63,541 bases of DNA, filler included, from Reticulomyxa filosa (GCA_000512085.1; 15 parts of 15 records of this genome joined end to end with filler, not necessarily neighbours in it), one strand, 5' to 3'; shown: positions 17,123-24,937, numbered from the whole stretch's first letter. A program made the numbers and translations. Notes: generated from the letters alone by a model not told the origin.

Positions 17123-17224
17123 NNNNNNNNNNNNNNNNNNNNNNNNNNNNNNNNNNNNNNNNNNNNTTAATTAATTAANNNNNNNNNNNNNNNNNNNNNN
17201 NNNNNNNNNNNNNNNNNNNNNNGG

Positions 17225-17797
17225 GGGCAGTCGCCGCTTGAGGCCGCCGTTGACCGCTATTCGCGGGCCTATCAGTCGATCGACCAGCACCGGCGCGAGG
17301 GCTTGCCGGTCCTCGACATGCAGCGGCAGGAAATAGGCGATGCCGGCCGGCAGCTCGACCAGGTGCAGGGCGGCATGAAAGATTTGCTGCGCTCGACGTT
17401 GCAAAACGACCCGGCGACGGTGCGCGCCATGACCGAGCTTTCCGGCCGGGAGCGTGTCGCGCAGGTTATCGACGGGATGAAGCGCGAAAACGCGGCGCTG
17501 CAAGACCCGAATATCAGGGCCGAGCGGTTCGTTGAACGCTGGCAGGAGCTACAGGGCCAGCGCCGGGAGCTTCGCGGCTGGCAGCACGACGATGCCCGCG
17601 CCAAGGTCGAAAGCCAGATGAACGGCATGACCAAGAGCCTTGAGCGTGACCCGCAGGTAGATTCCATCCTGCGCAATCGCCGTCAGGAACTCGGAATCGG
17701 GCAGCAGCAGCGCCGGGGGCAGAGCATCGCCCACGAGCTGCAAGAGGAAATGTCACGCAGCCGGCAACTTAGCCGGGGCATCGGTTTGGGAAGGTAG
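17225..17797 (+). CDS. traA: Ti-type conjugative relaxase TraA, C-terminal fragment
   Basis: Open from the contig edge: GQSPLEAAVDRYSRAYQSIDQHRREGLPVL...RAERFVERWQEL...MTKSLERDPQVDSILRNRRQELGI...RGIGLGR. This resembles an alphaproteobacterial TraA tail and is followed by the usual DUF6118 neighbour. Confidence 0.75.
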   Translation, partial: GQSPLEAAVDRYSRAYQSIDQHRREGLPVLDMQRQEIGDAGRQLDQVQGGMKDLLRSTLQNDPATVRAMTELSGRERVAQVIDGMKRENAALQDPNIRAERFVERWQELQGQRRELRGWQHDDARAKVESQMNGMTKSLERDPQVDSILRNRRQELGIGQQQRRGQSIAHELQEEMSRSRQLSRGIGLGR

Positions 17798-17808
17798 GCA
17801 CGGAGAAT

Positions 17809-18567
17809 ATGGCGGAGCTGGACGACGACAGGGAAGGAATCGAGCCGGAAGCACTGGACGAGGACGCCGGCGACCCGGCCGCCGCGTTCGACGCGCTCCG
17901 GCGCACGATCGAGACGCAGGGCGCGCAGATCGGCGCGGAAATGACCGTGATGCGGCGCGGGCTGGAAGCGGCTTTCGACCAGCTCGAAAAGATCGAGCCG
18001 GCGCAGGACTACAAGCCCCAGCTCGCCCAGCTCGTGCAGGCGCTCGACAATGTTGCGGAGCGGCTGCACGGCGTAGAGCAATCGCCTATTCTCCGGCAGG
18101 GTGCGACACACTATGCGGCGCTCCTCGAGCGCAGCGGCGAGGCCCTGATACGCACCGCCGCGCAGCAGCTCGAGCGGCAGGCGTCCGACCTCGAGCGCGC
18201 CGGCCGGAACCTCGCCGCTCATACGAAAAGCGCCTACGACCGGAAAAGTCAGGATTTCCGCATATGGATGGCCGGCCTTGTCGGGCTGTTCGTCGGCATA
18301 TTCCTGATTTTGCTGTTGCCGCGTTTCCTGCCCTTCTCGGCCGACACCCATGTTGCGGCGACCGTCATAGGTCAGGACCGATGGAACGCCGGCGTCACCA
18401 TGATGCGGGTGGCCGATCCCCGAAGCTGGCGCGGCGTGGCCGATTCCTCGCAGCTCGTGCGCGACAATGCCGAGGCGATCGGGCAATGCGCCGAGGCCGC
18501 GCGCACGGCCGGTTCAGATCAGCAATGCACCATCACCGTGAAAGCGCCGGCAGCACCGGCGCAGTAG
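17809..18567 (+). CDS. DUF6118-like plasmid membrane protein
   Basis: GGAG RBS; coiled coil, single TM, DRWNAG motif and C-terminal C..A....C-TITV. Typically found downstream of traA. Confidence 0.7.
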   Translation: MAELDDDREGIEPEALDEDAGDPAAAFDALRRTIETQGAQIGAEMTVMRRGLEAAFDQLEKIEPAQDYKPQLAQLVQALDNVAERLHGVEQSPILRQGATHYAALLERSGEALIRTAAQQLERQASDLERAGRNLAAHTKSAYDRKSQDFRIWMAGLVGLFVGIFLILLLPRFLPFSADTHVAATVIGQDRWNAGVTMMRVADPRSWRGVADSSQLVRDNAEAIGQCAEAARTAGSDQQCTITVKAPAAPAQ

Positions 18568-19151
18568 GGTTGTGGGGGGACACCAGTTATTTCGGGAGGT
18601 TTCTTCCGCCTCACAGGTCCGGCGGCCATCGCGACGAGGCGCGCCGCGATACGCTTGCGCAGTTGCTCGGGGAGCGGGCGCGACGACAGCGCCTCGTGAA
18701 TCCACAGCCCATCGGCGGCAAGGCGCGAAATGAACCTGTCCAACTCGGCAGCGTCGTTTCCAATCGGCGCAGGAGGTGCCCAGCGGTCGATGACCTGTTG
18801 CCACAGATCGCCAAGCTGCCGATTGTCGGAGCTTTCCAGCATGAGCAGCAGTTCGACCCGCCGGGCAGCTCTTGCGCAGGTGTTGATGTAGGCGGCGTGT
18901 CGTTCGGCGTCTGTCGCCCTGTCCGAGGTGTTGCCGGCGCTCGCTTCCAGCTCCTGTTCCCATGAGCGAGTCAGATGCTCATGGGTGGCGAGGATCAGGG
19001 CTTCGCGCGACGGGAAATGATACAGAAGGCCGGCGCGTGTCATGCCGGTTTCGAGCGCTACGGCGTCGAGGGTGACGGCGGTGAGGCCGTCACGCTCGAT
19101 GATGCTCACAATGGCTTCAAGCACTTCGAGGCGCTTGCTGGCTCTCGCCAT
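18519..19151 (-). CDS. TetR/AcrR family transcriptional regulator
   Basis: HTH VTLDAVALETGMTRAGLLYHFPSREAL and C-terminal RLAADGLW. Starts 10 nt after the MFS stop; 3' end overlaps DUF6118 convergently. Confidence 0.93.
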   Translation of the reverse strand: MARASKRLEVLEAIVSIIERDGLTAVTLDAVALETGMTRAGLLYHFPSREALILATHEHLTRSWEQELEASAGNTSDRATDAERHAAYINTCARAARRVELLLMLESSDNRQLGDLWQQVIDRWAPPAPIGNDAAELDRFISRLAADGLWIHEALSSRPLPEQLRKRIAARLVAMAAGPVRRKKPPEITGVPPQPYCAGAAGAFTVMVHC

Positions 19152-19161
19152 GTCGGCTTCC

Positions 19162-20673
19162 TTAGTGTTGTGTGGGATAGGCTGACGATTGCGAGCCGGG
19201 ACCGTAGCGCCGCAACAGGATGCCGGTGATCAGGGCACCCACGGCCAGAACACCCGCCGCCACGTACATGACGACCGTATAGGCGTGGTCGAATGCGATT
19301 CCTGCCGCTTGACGCACGACAACACCATCGGCCCCCGCCTCGTTGGCAAAGACCAGCGCCGACGCCATGCTGTCGCGGGCCGCTTCCGAGGTTCCGGCGG
19401 GGAACACGACGTTGACCGTATAGAGGTAGGCCAAAAGACTTCCGAGAATTGTGACAGCGAACAGACTGCCAAACTCGTAGGACACTTCCTCGACCGACGA
19501 CGCCATGCCGGCGCGATGCACAGGCACATTGCCCACAATAGCCGTTGATGCCACCGACATTGTTGCACCTACGCCGGCACCGGTCAGCGCCAGACCGGCG
19601 ATCAGCCAGCCAAGGCCATGAGTGATGCCCCATGTCGCAAGCAGGACCGCCAGCGATCCCGCCGCAAGCCCGCCAGCTATAAGGATACGTAGGCCAATAC
19701 GATGCAGGAATGCACCACCGAGCAGCGCAGTCGGCAATGATCCGAGCGCCGCCGCCGAAACCAGCATCCCGGCTTCCAGCGGCGTGAAGCCCGCAACGAG
19801 CTGGAAGCGTTGCGTCGTAGCAAGCTCAACACCGCCGATGGCGAACAGGGAGAACGCGGCCGCTAGAACGCCCGATGTGAACGCGGCATTGCGGAAGATC
19901 GAGAAGTCGAGCAGCGGGAACGGCAGGCGCAGTTGCCGGCGGACGAACAGCGCTCCGGCGAGGATGGCAACCAGCAGCGAAATAGCGGGGACGGCCCACG
20001 ACTGCCCGGCATGGGCAGATTCCTTGATCGCGATCACAAAAGCCGACAGCGCCACCAATGCCTGAAACGACGACACCACGTCCCAAGGCTTGGTCGCATC
20101 GCCGGCCACCTTCGGCGCAACGATCAGCGCCGAAATGAAGGCAGCGACCACTACCGGCACATTGATGAGGAACACCGACCCCCACCAGAAATGGCCGAGC
20201 AGAAAACCGCCGATGATCGGTCCGAGCGCAGCGCCGACGACCGACAACGACCCCCAGATCGCAATGGCGATGTTGCGTTCCCGGTCATCCTCGAAGGTGA
20301 CGCGGATGAGGGCGAGTGTCGCGGGCATCATCGCCGCCGCGCCGACCGCCAGAAAGGCCCGCGCCCCGATCAGGATTTCCGCTGTAGGCGAATAGGCCGC
20401 CACAATCGACGCGACACCGAACAGCACGAGGCCGATGAGGAACATGCGCCGGTGACCGATCCTGTCACCCAGCGTCCCGGTGCCGAGCAGCAGGCCGGCC
20501 ATGACGAGGGGGTATGCGTTGATGATCCACAACCCTTGCGTTGCCGTCGCGCCAAGCTCGCGCGTCAGGGTAGGCAGGGCCGTGTAGAGGACCGAATTGT
20601 CCAGAACGATAAGCAGGAGACCGGCGGCGACGGTCACCAGAAGAACCCAGCGGTTCGAGTGGGCGGCAGGCAT
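19162..20673 (-). CDS. MFS DHA2-family (QacA/SmvA/LfrA-like) drug:H+ antiporter
   Basis: 503 aa with LDNSVLYTALP (motif D1), WIINAY, GTLGDRIGHRR (motif A), GAALGPIIGG, WGSVFLINVP and EEVSYEFG. Confidence 0.93.
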   Translation of the reverse strand: MPAAHSNRWVLLVTVAAGLLLIVLDNSVLYTALPTLTRELGATATQGLWIINAYPLVMAGLLLGTGTLGDRIGHRRMFLIGLVLFGVASIVAAYSPTAEILIGARAFLAVGAAAMMPATLALIRVTFEDDRERNIAIAIWGSLSVVGAALGPIIGGFLLGHFWWGSVFLINVPVVVAAFISALIVAPKVAGDATKPWDVVSSFQALVALSAFVIAIKESAHAGQSWAVPAISLLVAILAGALFVRRQLRLPFPLLDFSIFRNAAFTSGVLAAAFSLFAIGGVELATTQRFQLVAGFTPLEAGMLVSAAALGSLPTALLGGAFLHRIGLRILIAGGLAAGSLAVLLATWGITHGLGWLIAGLALTGAGVGATMSVASTAIVGNVPVHRAGMASSVEEVSYEFGSLFAVTILGSLLAYLYTVNVVFPAGTSEAARDSMASALVFANEAGADGVVVRQAAGIAFDHAYTVVMYVAAGVLAVGALITGILLRRYGPGSQSSAYPTQH

Positions 20674-20701
20674 GATAGCACCATTCAGTGAGAGTAGCCA
20701 A

Positions 20702-20730
20702 ACTTTACAGACAAGTTAGTAAAGTATCAA
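20702..20730 (-). promoter_or_regulatory. sigma70 promoter of the MFS-tetR operon with overlapping TetR operator
   Basis: Minus strand TTGATA-N17-TAAAGT. The inverted repeat ACTTTAC-N10-GTAAAGT (20702-20725) covers the -10 and spacer. Confidence 0.75.
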
Positions 20731-20799
20731 GCGCCTGCCCGTGAGGAACTTCAGACAATGGCCGACAGCGGGGCTTCGCATTCCGGGGCGCGATCAATT

Positions 20800-20827
20800 T
20801 GTCGCGAAATTCCTGAAACCTGCACCA
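20800..20827. repeat. Putative serine-recombinase site A (28 bp)
   Basis: TGTCGCGAAATTCCTGAAACCTGCACCA; related to sites C, F, D and E. Confidence 0.6.
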
Positions 20828-20860
20828 CGTCCGCAGCGGCCCGGATTCCGGGCCGCGACG

Positions 20861-20913
20861 TGTCGCGAAAGTCAGTCGCACAAGCCTGACTTTCGCACCT
20901 GACTTTTGCGACA
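20861..20913. repeat. Compound inverted repeat B (putative accessory recombinase-binding site)
   Basis: TGTCGCGAAAGTCAG-TCGCACAAGC-CTGACTTTCGCAC-CTGACTTTTGCGACA, preceded by the perfect hairpin GCGGCCCGGATTCCGGGCCGC (20836-20856). Confidence 0.7.
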
Positions 20914-20946
20914 GATATTTCCCTGAAAATTCAGCGGTGGCGATTT

Positions 20947-20974
20947 TGTCGCGAAAATCAGGATTTCCGCGACA
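20947..20974. repeat. Putative serine-recombinase site C (28 bp), abutting the aph stop codon
   Basis: TGTCGCGAAAATCAGGATTTCCGCGACA; the aph TGA occupies 20975-20977. Confidence 0.75.
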
Positions 20975-21775
20975 TCAGCCCCACGTCAGCGGGTCGAGGC
21001 GCAGATAGAAGGCAAGGCGCTCCCGATCTGGCGCGCTGATGCCCAATATGTCGAACAGGATGGTGAAACCGCGCTCCGCTTCATGCGGGGTTGTCCAGCT
21101 CTCCCCGGCGTTGGCAACCATAAGTGCCAAATCAGCGTAGCGGTCTGCGGTTCCGAGCCGCCCCAAGTCGATCACCCCGGCACATTGCAGGCTACGAGGG
21201 TCCACTATAAAATTGGGCATACAAGGATCGCCGTGACAGACGACCATATCGGCGCGCTCTTGGTCGAGCCGAACCGGCAGCTCTCGCTCCACCCGTGCCA
21301 AGAGTTCCTGCTGTGGTCTGTTCTTGTCCTCGTCAGGCAAGAAGTCGGGATTGACGGCGTTGCGGGACACTACATCCACGGCGCTAGCGAACATCCGCGA
21401 CAAACTGCGCTCGAACGGGCATTGGACAACCGGCAGGCTGTGCAGAACACCAAGCTGCTGCGCCATTGAAGGCCACGCTTTGAGTAGGTCGGCCCCCGAC
21501 AGATCGACCGCCGCCACTCCGGGGATTGCCGTCATCGTCAGGCAAGCCCCTTTCTCCGTCGCTCGCCAGTCGATGACCTCGGGGCAGGCGACACCTCGGC
21601 CGTGCAGCCAAGTGAGACGGTCCCGTTCGTCGGCAAGATCAGCCACTCGCGCGGGCGATGCAATCTTTGCATAGGCAAGCCCATCGTCGCGGTGATAGAT
21701 GAAATCGCCAGACTCCCCGCTTCGGACGGGAACCCACGCGCGCGAATCTTCAAGTAACTCGTATGCCAAATTCAA
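20975..21775 (-). CDS. strA: Streptomycin 3''-phosphotransferase, APH(3'')-I / StrA-like divergent variant (266 aa)
   Basis: TTG start at 21775 with GAAGGAG RBS; the longer track ORF overlaps the upstream gene. GESGDF, ERDRL.WL.GRGVACPEV, VVCHGDPCMPNF, IDLGRLGTADRYADLAL and RLAFYLRLDPLTWG match StrA. Confidence 0.93.
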   Translation of the reverse strand: MNLAYELLEDSRAWVPVRSGESGDFIYHRDDGLAYAKIASPARVADLADERDRLTWLHGRGVACPEVIDWRATEKGACLTMTAIPGVAAVDLSGADLLKAWPSMAQQLGVLHSLPVVQCPFERSLSRMFASAVDVVSRNAVNPDFLPDEDKNRPQQELLARVERELPVRLDQERADMVVCHGDPCMPNFIVDPRSLQCAGVIDLGRLGTADRYADLALMVANAGESWTTPHEAERGFTILFDILGISAPDRERLAFYLRLDPLTWG

Positions 21776-21786
21776 ATACGCTCCTT

Positions 21787-21814
21787 CGTCGCAGAAATCC
21801 CGAAACACGCGACA
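21787..21814. repeat. Putative serine-recombinase site F (28 bp) between aph and oxidoreductase
   Basis: CGTCGCAGAAATCCCGAAACACGCGACA; 22/28 identical to site D by manual alignment; abuts the aph RBS. Confidence 0.72.
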
Positions 21815-21833
21815 GCAAGCTGGGGGCCGCCGT

Positions 21834-22451
21834 CTACGATCCGCTACGGAATACACGCCGGCTAAGCCCTTCGGCTTCTTCCGGCCAAGATTTTCGTTGT
21901 TTATCTGAGCTTCCCACCACCGGCCTGAACACATGCCGATGGTAGGTTTCAACACCGCAGTATGGCAGGACGCATCGGCCCCAGATCAGTTCTAGCGGGT
22001 CGCCGAGTTCTGTTCTTTCGCGCTCTGCGTGAGTATCCGAAGTGTTGAAGATCAGGGCGCTTTTTATCGAAAGAAGGCCCTCCGGCAATCCATCGGCCGA
22101 TGCCAGCCGATAAGCGACACCCGGAACAAGTATCCGGTCGAGCCACCCCGCCAGTACGGCCGGTGGCTTCCCCCACCAGTTTGGATGCACTACCAGCAAG
22201 CCATCGGCCGAGGCGATCTCGGAACGATGTTGCCTTGTCACCGGGTCCGCTGCGCGGGAAAGGGCAACCTCTAGCGTATCACCTATGCTGTAGGCTTCTT
22301 CCGCCATCAGGCAGGGGTCAAATCCTTCGGCGTAAAGATCGTGGTGAAGGACTTCATGGCCGAGGGCGCTTAGCTCCTCGCGAGCGCGCGCGGAAACGGC
22401 ATGACAGAAGCTCGACGGTCGGGGATGGGCGACAAGGGACAAGATACGCAT
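21834..22451 (-). CDS. Flavodoxin-fold NAD(P)H dehydrogenase (quinone) family protein
   Basis: MRILSLVAHPRPSSFCHA, HDLYAEGFDP, ADGLLVVHPNWWGKPPAVLAGWLDRILVPGVAY (Flavodoxin_2 pattern); ATG at 22451. Confidence 0.9.
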   Translation of the reverse strand: MRILSLVAHPRPSSFCHAVSARAREELSALGHEVLHHDLYAEGFDPCLMAEEAYSIGDTLEVALSRAADPVTRQHRSEIASADGLLVVHPNWWGKPPAVLAGWLDRILVPGVAYRLASADGLPEGLLSIKSALIFNTSDTHAERERTELGDPLELIWGRCVLPYCGVETYHRHVFRPVVGSSDKQRKSWPEEAEGLSRRVFRSGS

Positions 22452-22502
22452 GGGCACAGCATAGAGGTTCGGCGTGATGGGCCGCAATGCGATCAAGGTG
22501 AC

Positions 22503-22564
22503 TGTCCCGAAAATCCCAAAACCCGCGACAGCTTTCTTGTCGCATAATAGGGATTTCCGCGACG
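22503..22564. repeat. Paired putative recombinase sites D (22503-22530) and E (22538-22564) upstream of the recombinase
   Basis: TGTCCCGAAAATCCCAAAACCCGCGACA and TGTCGCATAATAGGGATTTCCGCGACG, in the usual position of res/inversion sites. Confidence 0.75.
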
Positions 22565-22572
22565 GTTTGCAC
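22544..22572 (-). promoter_or_regulatory. Candidate promoter firing into the cargo genes (Pc-like)
   Basis: Minus strand GTGCAA-N17-TATTAT, overlapping site E; the -35 is only a 3/6 match. Confidence 0.4.
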
Positions 22573-22588
22573 GAGGTAGATTCCGGGC

Positions 22589-23182
22589 ATGTCGCCCACG
22601 AGGAAGCCCCTGCCCTTGCTTATCGGATATGCCCGCGTCTCGACCGACGGCCAGACTCTCGACCAGCAGCGCGCGGCGCTGAAAGCGGCCGGCTGCAAGC
22701 GCGTGTTCGAGGAAAAGGCATCCGGCGCGCAGCGCGGCCGCCGCGAGCTGGCGAAGATGCTGGACCATTTGCAGCCCGGGAACGTGGTGACGGTGACGCG
22801 GCTTGATCGCCTCGCCCGATCGACGCGCGATCTTCTCGACATTGCTGAGCGGATCGGCCACGCCGAGGCCGGCTTGCGTTCGCTGGCCGAGCCGTGGGCC
22901 GACACGACGACGCCGGCCGGGCGCATGGTGCTGACTTTCTTCGCCGGCGTTGCCGAGTTCGAGCGCAGCTTGATCCATGAGCGCACGAGCGCCGGCCGCG
23001 CGGCGGCGAAGGCGAAGGGCGTTCGGTTCGGCCGCCCCCCTGCCCTGTCGGCCGAGCAGATCGCACACGCCCGCCAGCTCATCAGCGAGGACAAGAAGCC
23101 GGCCGAGGTTGCCCGGCTCTTGGGTGTGCATCGCTCTACCCTCTACCGGGCCATAGAACGCATTGACGTGGATACGCATTGA
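22589..23182 (+). CDS. Small serine recombinase (resolvase/Pin-Hin invertase family)
   Basis: IGYARVSTDGQ (catalytic Ser), VTRLDRLARS, DTTTPAGRMV..FFAGVAEFER..I.ERT..G...A...GVRFGRPP and a C-terminal HTH LGVHRSTLYR. Confidence 0.96.
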   Translation: MSPTRKPLPLLIGYARVSTDGQTLDQQRAALKAAGCKRVFEEKASGAQRGRRELAKMLDHLQPGNVVTVTRLDRLARSTRDLLDIAERIGHAEAGLRSLAEPWADTTTPAGRMVLTFFAGVAEFERSLIHERTSAGRAAAKAKGVRFGRPPALSAEQIAHARQLISEDKKPAEVARLLGVHRSTLYRAIERIDVDTH

Positions 23183-23281
23183 CGCAACTACGTTTAGTCG
23201 CCCGGCCCTAGAAGTAGTGCCTTTCTCGCCCCCTTACGCAAAGGGTTGCAGAATCGGGCGATTTCGTCTCTTCATGTAGAC

Positions 23282-23497
23282 ATGGCGAGTCGCACCCGAG
23301 AACAAGTTAAGCTGGAAAGTGTCCGAAACCTGCGCGCCCGTTGGCGCGCGGAGGGCCGGATTCTTGTGCAGGCCGATCTGCCCGGCGAGCTGGTCGCGGC
23401 GATTGACCGCCTGAAGGACGACGCGGGCTTGCGAGGGCGCGCGCCGATCATCGAGGAAGCGTTGAGGTTCTATATCGAAGCGAAGCAAGGGACATAA
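23282..23497 (+). CDS. Ribbon-helix-helix (CopG-like) protein
   Basis: 71 aa; LVQADLPGELVAAIDRLK...RAPIIEEALRFYIE fits the RHH pattern; lies upstream of rep. Confidence 0.75.
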   Translation: MASRTREQVKLESVRNLRARWRAEGRILVQADLPGELVAAIDRLKDDAGLRGRAPIIEEALRFYIEAKQGT

Positions 23498-23501
23498 CGG
23501 C

Positions 23502-23535
23502 AAAACGCCCGACCGTTGGCGCGGTCGAGCGTTTT
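23502..23535. terminator. Bidirectional intrinsic terminator/attenuator hairpin between RHH gene and rep
   Basis: AAAACGCCCGACCG-TTGGCG-CGGTCGAGCGTTTT. Confidence 0.7.
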
Positions 23536-23691
23536 ATAGGCCGTCAGACACACCGTAGAGCCGGGGCCATCAAAGTCTCCCCTTATCTACGCTAGAGCAC
23601 TCCAATTCGCAAGATTGATTCTTGCGGAAACGGGGAAAGCTGTGCCTGCCGTCCGCGCTGTCATGTCCTTCAAAAGGAAGGACGAGGGCAT

Positions 23692-24570
23692 ATGTTGAGG
23701 ACGCACTACGCGGCCGCGATCGGCTGCGCGCGCGGGAACGCGCTTGATGAAATCATGCGGGAGGTTTGGACTCGATACGGCGCGGGCCAGCTCACCGACG
23801 ACGAGGCCGGCGAGCTTACGACGCTCGCCCATGAGCGCCGGGCCGCCCTGCGGGGATCGGGACAGACCGCGCTAGGGTTGATCTTTCCGCCCCCTGCCCC
23901 ACGCTGCCCGACACCAGTTCGCCGGCATAGCCATATCCGGGGACGATCGGAGGGCCGCATATGGCGGCCGACGACGCGCAAGGACGTGCAGGCGATCTTG
24001 AAGGCGGCCGAAATCTACAACGAGGCCGGCTTGCACGAGAAGGGCGAGCGCAGCGGGCCGCTAGGATCGGTGGCGCTGGACGTGCTGCGGCTGTTCGTCA
24101 ATCTCATCGACTTCCGCACCGGCCGGCTTGAGCCGTCAATCACCACGATCATGGATCGGCTAGGCCGGTCGCGCGATACGATCGTGCGGGCGCTGAAGAA
24201 TCTGCGGGCGCATGGCTTCATTGACTGGCTGCGGCGCTATGAGCCGACCGGGAACGAAGGGCGCGGCCCACAGGTGCAGCAGGCCAGCAACGCCTATCGC
24301 CTGTCCCTGCCGGAGAAGGCCCGGCAGTTCCTTGGACGGTTCGGCAAGGCTCCACCCCCGCCCGCCGATCATGGACAGGATCAGCGGGCTTGGAGCGAGG
24401 CAATCGACGCCTACAAGACCACCCTGCCCCTCGATGAGCGAACGCAGATCGACGCCGGCGATAGCCCGCTAGGACAGGCCCTTGTGCGCATGGCGAAAAA
24501 CTTCATGAAACGTGAGTCCGATAACCAGACTGAATCCCCATCTGATCTTTATCTAAGAGGCAAAACATAA
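23692..24570 (+). CDS. repA: Plasmid replication initiator, HTH-type RepA
   Basis: GPLGSVALDVLRLFVNLIDFRTGRLEPSITTIMDRLGRSRDTIVRALKNLRAHGFIDWLRR..QVQQASNAY resembles sphingomonad/alphaproteobacterial plasmid Rep proteins. Start codon uncertain. Confidence 0.8.
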   Translation: MLRTHYAAAIGCARGNALDEIMREVWTRYGAGQLTDDEAGELTTLAHERRAALRGSGQTALGLIFPPPAPRCPTPVRRHSHIRGRSEGRIWRPTTRKDVQAILKAAEIYNEAGLHEKGERSGPLGSVALDVLRLFVNLIDFRTGRLEPSITTIMDRLGRSRDTIVRALKNLRAHGFIDWLRRYEPTGNEGRGPQVQQASNAYRLSLPEKARQFLGRFGKAPPPPADHGQDQRAWSEAIDAYKTTLPLDERTQIDAGDSPLGQALVRMAKNFMKRESDNQTESPSDLYLRGKT

Positions 24571-24937
24571 GCGGTCGCCGCTGTTCGGGCTGCTTACGCA
24601 GCCCTGCGGCGGTTCCGGCCCGCGTATAGGCGGGCCGGGAAACGGCACCCCCACTACCTAATCCGCACCGCTCGCGCCTGCGACCAGCGTCCTATGGCTT
24701 TCGAGAGGGAGTGAAGGGCAAGGTCGGCGCTTAATTATTTACGTTAATACGTATTGACGTGTAAACGTATTACCTTGATAGAAGGCGATGGCGGCGGCCG
24801 GGAAAACGTGCTAGAGTGTACACAATTCAACACACGGNNNNNNNNNNNNNNNNNNNNNNNNNNNNNNNNNNNNNNNNNNNNTTAATTAATTAANNNNNNN
24901 NNNNNNNNNNNNNNNNNNNNNNNNNNNNNNNNNNNNN

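Follow-up and report, generated by a model that had tools for sequence, protein, structure and literature searches.

We analysed a 63,541-nucleotide stretch of DNA (the window), which is filed under Reticulomyxa filosa (GCA_000512085.1) and joins 15 records of that genome end to end with filler, and concentrated on a region in which the gene for a small serine recombinase of the resolvase/invertase family lies beside a series of 28-bp dyads and the genes that they frame. The region represents the cargo part of an alphaproteobacterial plasmid that is small and either conjugative or mobilisable; along its backbone, the order is TraA relaxase, DUF6118, cargo, small serine recombinase, CopG and HTH_36 replication protein. 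The cargo comprises a TetR regulator and an efflux pump on the left, followed by an aminoglycoside phosphotransferase gene (aph) and a quinone oxidoreductase gene. An initial annotation had read the region as an integron-like array of gene cassettes that is operated by the recombinase. The comparison with related plasmids makes it likely that the dyads are the binding and crossover sites of the plasmid’s own recombinase and that their use has shaped the cargo region in the ways described below.

The dyads are of the type TGTCGCGAAAATC-NN-GATTTYCGCGACA (13 + 2 + 13 bp) with TGTCGCG at the outer ends (Table 1). The half-site TGTCGCGAAAATC, with up to three mismatches allowed, was matched ten times against an expectation of 2.33 +/- 1.37, and none of 100 shuffles reached ten. 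A weight matrix that was built from the family sites (consensus TGTCGCGAAAATC CT AAGTTTCGCGACA) gave 221 matches of at least 16 bits when 1.2 Mb of related loci were scanned, whereas shuffled sequence gave none. All five sites of the initial annotation, A, C, F, D and E, were found exactly where it had placed them, as were the contacts that it had described between sites and genes: the stop codon of aph (20975-20977) abuts site C, its ribosome-binding site AAGGAG (21781-21786) abuts site F, and the stop codon of the oxidoreductase gene (21834) is 19 nt from F. Its inventory had overlooked site B, the 24-nt arms of which are 79% complementary and which contains a second inverted repeat (11/11). 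Site B is equidistant from A and C, its centre being 73.5 bp from theirs, and is conserved in L001, L002, L004, L005, L009 and L011, where L numbers denote the related loci. The right half of site A (GAAACCTGCACCA) is degenerate, and accessory sites are absent near the solitary site F. The D-E pair is conserved in L004, L017, L018, L020, L021 and L022, and E is probably an accessory or operator site that overlaps the promoter region of the recombinase gene. The central dinucleotides fall into two classes, CT (A on the plus strand and C on the minus strand, mutually inverted) and CC (F and D, both on the plus strand), the latter being the direct repeats with a shared core that had been proposed.

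Table 1. Features of the cargo region and its flanks, in window positions (the gene table covers 17223-24837)
Feature	Position	Strand	Remarks
TraA-type relaxase gene, 3' end	ends 17797	+	
DUF6118 protein gene	17809-18567	+	
TetR regulator gene	18519-19151	-	cargo left of site A
DHA2-family MFS efflux pump gene	19162-20673	-	cargo left of site A
Site A, 28-bp dyad	20800-20827	+	core CT 20813-14; 29.9 bits; outer dyad of res-like unit
Inner res segment, A centre to C centre	20814-20960		both orientations on near-identical plasmids
Site B, 53-bp palindromic accessory element	20861-20913		four half-site-like repeats
Site C, near-perfect 28-bp dyad	20947-20974	-	core AG (CT on minus) 20960-61; 42.8 bits
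APH(3'')-family aminoglycoside phosphotransferase gene	20975-21775	-	PF01636 E 4e-31; NCBIfam APH_3pp
Site F, solitary 28-bp dyad	21787-21814	+	core CC 21800-01; 30.5 bits
Oxidoreductase cassette, F centre to D centre	21801-22516	-	716 bp
NAD(P)H dehydrogenase (quinone) gene, Flavodoxin_2 fold	21834-22451	-	PF02525 E 4.4e-30
Site D, 28-bp dyad beside recombinase gene	22503-22530	+	core CC 22516-17; 36.6 bits
Site E, 27-bp variant dyad between D and recombinase gene	22538-22564		
Small serine recombinase gene, resolvase/invertase family	22589 or 22616 to 23182	+	PF00239 E 6.8e-42 + HTH_7
CopG-type protein gene	23246-23497	+	
HTH_36 replication protein gene	23692-24570	+	

The PF00239 catalytic domain occupies residues 12-145 of the recombinase and is followed by a C-terminal HTH_7 domain (PF02796, E 7.1e-07, residues 148-187). 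The longest open reading frame starts at ATG 22589; the canonical N-terminus MLIGYARVST is read from TTG 22616, with GAGGAAG just before it, and the translation from there, MLIGYARVSTDGQ, holds the GYARVST catalytic-serine motif. The RefSeq annotation of the L001 recombinase has the 188-aa form, the alignment to the Gin invertase and the gamma-delta resolvase begins at residue 1, and the true start is probably TTG 22616, which gives 188 aa. Among the PDB entries, Gin invertase was the best match (3e-34), followed by gamma-delta resolvase (2e-28) and Bin3/Sin (3e-13); the gamma-delta and Tn3 resolvases match at about 1e-28 to 1e-27. In a survey limited to one genome per species, which yielded 80 loci with homologous recombinases (66-100% identity), 73 loci had enough upstream sequence, and in 64 of these a dyad was present no farther than 260 bp upstream of the gene. 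The usual positions were about -155 and -82, most of these loci having a plain two-dyad res, and 85 of 128 dyads were concentrated in 1.9% of the bases. Because dyads lie upstream of 64 of the 73 homologues, because the protein has the domains and the motif of a resolvase and because it is the sole recombinase on the ~13.9-kb relatives, we infer that the adjacent recombinase is the enzyme that acts on the dyads. A sister subgroup, L003, L006, L007 and L024-L027, the recombinases of which are ~80% identical, has a different accessory layout ~150 bp upstream, i.e., a CT-core site I, a 46-bp spacer, the 28-bp palindrome TGTCGCAAGTGCTACGCCACTTGCGACA and one further half-site. Additionally, L003, L034 and L095 have a solitary inverted CC dyad a few bp past the DUF6118 stop codon, so that the cargo slot of this subgroup is bracketed by unlike, inverted cores.

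The points at which the homology between relatives ends coincide with the dyads. Out of 285 merged breakpoints (homology of at least 95%), 40 lay within 16 bp of a dyad centre compared with 1.9 expected, many of the 40 being inherited copies, and the figure is not a count of separate events. The 99.9% identity of the window to L001, L002, L009, L010 and L013 ends at 20816, in site A, and L094 is window-like from the right half of A onward, with a different left half and left context (NmrA and HxlR genes where the window has TetR and MFS). The homology of the aph block to L003, L093, L095, L103 and L104 begins at 20960, in site C, and an identity of 99.6-99.9% to L001, L008-L016 and L088-L092 resumes at 22503-22516, in site D. 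The dyads behave as two halves in these comparisons: the aph-linked half of C is constant and its partner half varies across contexts, the left half of F stays with aph in all contexts, and the left half of D (TGTCCCGAAAATC) accompanies the oxidoreductase gene in every context with a right half that differs in the window, L095 and L093. The proposal that the sites are cargo boundaries was upheld to the extent that dyad centres are homology breakpoints and that different cargo was found between the sites on 99.9% identical backbones; it failed for A and C, which belong to a res-like unit. The crossover footprints at A, C, D and the solitary F are evolutionary, not kinetic, evidence. These breakpoints, as well as the inversion and the empty site that are described next, are established by the alignments of the relatives, whereas the frequency and control of recombinase action and the expression of the cargo are matters of inference.

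An inversion separates L009, together with L010, L013 and L016, from L011; all are 13.9-kb plasmids, and their recombinases are 100% identical. When L009 is compared with L011, the 149-bp stretch from one CT core to the other is a perfect inversion (149/149 positions match once one copy is reverse-complemented), the flanks are identical at 1092/1094 and 1357/1357 positions and the junctions share only ~6 bp of inverted identity; the orientation of the inner res segment in the window is that of L011. Short repeats can also recombine in a RecA-dependent or illegitimate way, which would require no site-specific enzyme, and this could in principle have involved the dyads, as they are repeats of 13-28 bp that homologous recombination may occasionally exploit. 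Such recombination would not be expected to yield an inversion that is centred exactly on the cores despite the ~6 bp of identity at its ends, hybrid sites that are clean half-site swaps, or breakpoints that are ~20-fold enriched at dyad centres, and we regard this origin as extremely improbable; homologous recombination was rejected on the exact centre-to-centre inversion. A further comparison, of L011 with the window, shows 657 bp with a P-loop kinase-like gene in the former versus 1527 bp with aph and the oxidoreductase gene in the latter between sites C and D. The identity is 99.6-99.9% up to site C and from site D onward, and because it is only ~92% in the inner res segment, the whole block from the A centre to the D centre was probably exchanged. 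In L020, the A-to-F block is inverted relative to the window.

The presence of the 149-bp segment in both orientations on near-identical plasmids, together with Gin invertase being the best match of the recombinase, is what would be expected if the A-to-C region were a phase-variation switch, inverted in a programmed manner to control the genes on either side, with the other dyads incidental. However, a promoter and terminator scan gave nothing within A-B-C or in the D/E region and found only the MFS promoters, the same flanking genes accompany either orientation, and in the public sequencing runs the orientations belong to distinct plasmid variants with inner segments that are ~8% different. 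Such a switch also leaves the behaviour of F and D unexplained, which makes it an improbable function of the locus.

The oxidoreductase gene provided the one case of a precise cassette. Two plasmid loci, L095 and L003 (the Roseomonas plasmid NZ_CP024589), are 99.93% identical over 5941 bp and 99.92% identical over 1306 bp, and they differ by a 716-bp dyad-to-dyad insertion with the oxidoreductase gene, which is present in L095. The dyads that flank the gene in L095 are TGTCGCGGGTTTC-GG-GATTTTCGGGACA and TGTCGCGTGTTTC-GG-GATTTCTGCGACG, whereas L003 has a single hybrid dyad, TGTCGCGGGTTTC-GG-GATTTCTGCGACG, in which the left half of D' is joined to the right half of F'. The hybrid dyad is the mark left by conservative recombination at the CC/GG core. 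The initial annotation had called for a search for empty-site alleles and had proposed an assay of F x D recombination: such an allele was found in NZ_CP024589, and F x D recombination has demonstrably moved the oxidoreductase gene in or out as a 716-bp unit. When circularised, this unit would have one dyad, and the site is an ordinary double-stranded dyad. A megablast search of PLSDB gave no copy of the oxidoreductase module outside the window arrangement, and its other contexts were seen only in metagenome contigs.

Sites A, B and C form a single mirror-symmetric, res-like unit of ~175 bp (28-bp dyad, 33 bp, 53-bp B, 33 bp, 28-bp dyad), which is uninterrupted in L004 and L009-L013 and partial in pAMI2. 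The initial annotation had taken A and C for cassette borders, which had to be given up, as they form one conserved unit with B that is uninterrupted in L004 and has Tn402-like insertions inside it; a reading of A, B and C as three separate borders was likewise discarded on the 175-bp unit of L004, L009 and pAMI2. In L001 and L002, a Tn402-like tniABQR element with a class 1 or class 3 integron lies between C and B, where a Tn402-type inverted repeat (TGTCGTTTTCAGAAGACGGCTGCAC) is visible; the two insertions are at adjacent positions and possibly represent one shared event. L097 has a further Tn402-like element between B and C at another position, L096 has an insertion sequence between B and C, and in L008 and run X19 (X numbers denote public sequencing runs) a Tn402 end abuts 20755-20766, beside site A. 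Elements of the Tn5053/Tn402 family are known to insert preferentially at resolvase-occupied res sites (PMC7765201). Because of this targeting and because the Tn402-like insertions occupy several distinct positions, there is good indirect evidence that A-B-C is bound by the recombinase in vivo. In this respect, the unit resembles the parA-res of IncP plasmids, a Tn5053/Tn402 target, as L001, L002, L097 and L008 have tniABQR elements with integrons of class 1 or class 3 within A-B-C or next to it; this likeness bears only on the status of A-B-C as a res and not on cassette behaviour. The elements concerned occupy 2375-9910 in L001 (NZ_CP088967; tniABQR, blaIMP-8, class 1) and 6657-15366 in L002 (LC778123; blaIMP-1, class 3), which are clinical and sewage Brucella (Ochrobactrum) plasmids with a backbone that is 99.9% identical to the window.

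Since res hunters treat A-B-C as a res site, the locus might be an ordinary multimer-resolution system, in which the dyads serve as res subsites or operators and plasmid cointegration has now and then left a mosaic behind, without any cassette behaviour. This would agree with the simple res of most homologues, which consists of two dyads at 155 and 82 bp ahead of the gene, and with the resolvase-mediated module exchange at res site I that has been described in Tn3-family transposons, e.g., for the toxin-antitoxin modules of Tn5501, TnTsp1 and Tn4662a (PMC7157771). However, ordinary res biology predicts neither the solitary site F between two genes nor crossovers at both outer dyads of one res unit, and it does not account for a precise single-gene presence/absence difference, two core classes or single genes that are repeatedly framed tightly by dyads. 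We therefore consider it unlikely that multimer resolution by itself explains the locus.

The remaining cargo was used to weigh the array that had been proposed. In eight relatives, the slot between the last CT dyad and D, which mostly has inverted dyads of unlike core at its ends, is occupied by modules of one or two genes that differ from relative to relative (P-loop kinase-like, alpha/beta hydrolase, MarR, ArsR + AHSA1, MBL-fold hydrolase, AAA_28, LOG and AHSA1). Each of them is encoded on the minus strand, and the distance from its stop codon to a dyad is 0-19 nt. Because of their inverted, unlike flanking dyads, these modules would be swappable and not excisable. The P-loop kinase-like module of L009 was sought in other contexts and none was found. 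The aph gene itself scores 418 bits with APH_3pp (cut-off 325), which is under the exception cut-off for APH(3'')-Ib, and most likely starts at TTG 21775 or 21769 rather than at an ATG. It was rejected as a simple cassette on its CT and CC cores, and an aph-only indel was not found on an otherwise identical backbone.

A dedicated integron-like platform would capture circular single-gene cassettes beside the recombinase gene and express a co-oriented array from a promoter in site E. The compact oxidoreductase unit (a 618-bp gene within 716 bp) with its single dyad when circular and its empty-site allele, and the succession of minus-strand slot modules in the eight relatives, are in keeping with such a platform, as is the orientation of the window cargo, in which the MFS, aph and oxidoreductase genes are all on the minus strand and divergent from the recombinase, as had been noted initially. 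However, the oxidoreductase module is the only one that is flanked by direct dyads of the same core, so the two-cassette array of the initial annotation could not be maintained, and most slot modules lie between inverted CT and CC dyads from which a single crossover cannot excise them. Moreover, on L003-type plasmids, aph and the oxidoreductase gene are at the far end of the cargo region and face the recombinase, the gene beside D is on the plus strand in L004, and the promoter candidate of site E (GTGCAA-N17-TATTAT), which is present in the sequence, is under the threshold of the consensus scan. Such a platform is thus a doubtful, if conceivable, description of the locus, and module exchange at resolvase sites with one true cassette is ranked above it.

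Religation by serine recombinases requires matching central 2 bp. If strand exchange takes place at the central dinucleotide and CT and CC are two non-interchangeable core classes, with D and E as the site pair beside the gene and F as a solitary crossover site, all of the arrangements seen among the relatives are accounted for. Recombination of F with D (direct, CC) would move the oxidoreductase unit in or out, as in L095 versus L003; in the window, the deletion would leave the hybrid dyad CGTCGCAGAAATC-CC-AAAACCCGCGACA. Recombination of A with C (inverted, CT) would flip the inner res segment, as in L009 versus L011, and an outer inverted CC pair would flip the whole A-to-F block, as in L020 versus the window. 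Between co-resident plasmids, a CT x CT crossover followed by a CC x CC crossover would swap blocks in the manner of recombinase-mediated cassette exchange, the blocks being A-to-D or the C-to-D block that carries aph and the oxidoreductase gene. The latter would have been transferred, with its orientation reversed, from a window-type to an L003-type backbone, which is the arrangement of L093, L095 and run X19. In this scheme, aph would move inside blocks by paired CT x CT and CC x CC crossovers and excision between C and F would be unnecessary. The initial annotation had cautioned that the cores of C and F differ; this is correct, and no evidence of C x F excision was found, while its concern over how aph could move is answered by the paired matching-core crossovers, which would explain the contexts of aph.

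Several observations weigh against the view that the recombinase has moved the cargo by way of the dyads. The activity of the enzyme is deduced from sequence comparison only, and among backbones that are at least 98.5% identical there was only one clean dyad-to-dyad indel, the others being transposon or insertion sequence insertions; the further rearrangements described above are inversions or replacements of blocks. The aph gene is flanked by unlike cores, the dyad at the far end is not recognisable for some cargo (LysE in L093 and the cargo in L012 and L018), and the plus-strand gene beside D in L004 departs from the common orientation. Classical resolvases recombine only between full res sites in direct repeat, and activity at the solitary F together with the inversions would need a less regulated enzyme. 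Furthermore, the public runs were examined as contigs, in which ongoing switching or excised circles are not visible.

The evidence from public runs consists of Logan contigs. The exact 2.5-kb arrangement (20700-23200) was found in ~20 runs from ~10 studies of leaf, soil, invertebrate, aquatic and aquaculture metagenomes, and its occurrence in unrelated studies means either a very widespread host or a laboratory or reagent contaminant. The run contigs break at dyads. One backbone contig of run X16, with a depth of 30.6, stops at 20816 and has two continuations, a window form (depth 12) and an L009-type form (depth 21.4), and a contig of run X19 has the D-oxidoreductase-F-aph block linked to an L003-type recombinase. 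What these contigs demonstrate is the coexistence of variants within one run and not ongoing recombination. In runs X19 and X20, there were also contigs that lack 267 bp at the 3' end of the recombinase gene (22934-23202) and have 29 other letters instead, which probably represent a related plasmid with another recombinase C-terminus or downstream junction.

Among known systems, the locus resembles in several respects the res exchange of Tn3-family transposons, with which it shares a small serine resolvase, the loss of homology at the central dinucleotide of a 28-bp site I next to the resolvase gene, and cargo that abuts the res. It differs in having further dyads that are competent for crossover at a distance from the gene (A, C and the solitary F), in its asymmetric CT and CC cores as opposed to the AT core of the Tn3-family site, in the precise single-gene presence/absence and the inversions, and in being a plasmid rather than a transposon. 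The classical res of Tn3 and gamma-delta has a comparable cluster of dimer-binding dyads beside the gene (D and E here), whereas crossovers beyond site I, a solitary site and inversion within one unit set the present locus apart. Some resolvase-type enzymes (beta of pSM19035, Sin and Bin3/Tn552) invert as well as resolve. These enzymes and Gin, Hin and Min have the same protein size and fold and also invert between inverted sites; however, neither a Fis-type enhancer nor a binding site for an HU-like bending protein came to light here, no search having been aimed at enhancers, and the mirror-symmetric A-B-C with two crossover dyads around a four-repeat element matches none of them.

Like integrons, the locus has a recombinase gene beside a primary site, compact one-gene units that have one site when circular and are placed next to that gene, and resistance or detoxification cargo that is mostly co-oriented. 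Unlike the IntI tyrosine integrase, its sole recombinase is a PF00239 serine enzyme, and its sites are double-stranded 28-bp dyads of the same kind as the primary site, whereas integrons use folded single-stranded attC; moreover, one bona fide cassette was seen, and the equivalent of the Pc promoter is only a candidate. To our knowledge, the mobility of gene cassettes has so far been tied to tyrosine recombinases, i.e., integron integrases and XerCD at pdif. The pdif modules of Acinetobacter plasmids are cassette-like modules of the XerC/D recombinases (PMC13141974, PMC5790767). They are similarly small accessory modules that are bounded by 28-bp sites, often inverted, and are shuffled through cointegrate formation and resolution, but they depend on the host XerC/XerD and a 6-bp spacer rather than on a plasmid-encoded serine recombinase and a 2-bp core. 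Our literature search, in which absence is weak evidence given its incomplete coverage, yielded only the res exchange of the Tn3 family, the pdif modules and the res hunters. It revealed no description of cassettes or modules bounded by small serine-recombinase sites, and the same holds for a res of mirror symmetry in which both dyads can cross over and for core classes that function as a pair of heterospecific sites.

The comparisons made here provide nucleotide-level evidence that a small serine recombinase did cassette-type work on natural plasmids, i.e., insertion or excision, block swaps and flips. Clinical isolates of Brucella (Ochrobactrum) and Roseomonas carry plasmids of this kind, as do many environmental samples, and their res site is also a landing pad for Tn402-type integrons with IMP carbapenemases. 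Because pieces of the backbone are now found in enterobacterial resistance plasmids, the locus forms a connection between the gene pools of the environment and the clinic. With a single 188-aa enzyme and 28-bp sites, the system is compact, complete in itself and readily testable, and it could serve as a tool if the CT and CC cores prove to be orthogonal. More speculatively, it may be a true serine-recombinase counterpart of the integron, in which solitary 28-bp dyads with orthogonal CT and CC cores would permit the routine integration, excision, inversion and exchange of single-gene cassettes between co-resident plasmids (a natural recombinase-mediated cassette exchange) and would seed enterobacterial resistance plasmids via res-hunting integrons.

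The plasmid family was typed by BLAST against PLSDB as rep_cluster_1420 with a MOBQ relaxase, and its members include pAMI2 (Paracoccus aminophilus), pT210003-IMP (Brucella anthropi) and pSUW6_IMP-1 (Brucella intermedia), each of which has variable cargo between the DUF6118 and recombinase genes. The segment 17223-20816, from the TraA 3' end through the DUF6118, TetR and MFS genes to the centre of site A, recurs with 99.8-99.9% identity in many plasmids of Citrobacter, Enterobacter, E. coli, Klebsiella, Pantoea, Pseudomonas and Burkholderia, with sul1 sometimes adjoining. These near-copies look like backbone DNA of the family, whose res site had received Tn402-like class 1 integrons that then took the adjoining DNA with them. 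L020 (JAEZXR010000135), which is filed as a Bacillota metagenome-assembled genome, is the same alphaproteobacterial plasmid type (DUF6118, res, aph and a recombinase at 92%), and its bin assignment is probably wrong. Lastly, the 259-kb metagenome contig Ga0209368_1000037 (L090, L092) has the window arrangement at 99.94% over 6.2 kb and also a second copy of the D/recombinase region with a D left half of the L009 type; either the assembly is chimeric or the region is present twice on one large replicon.

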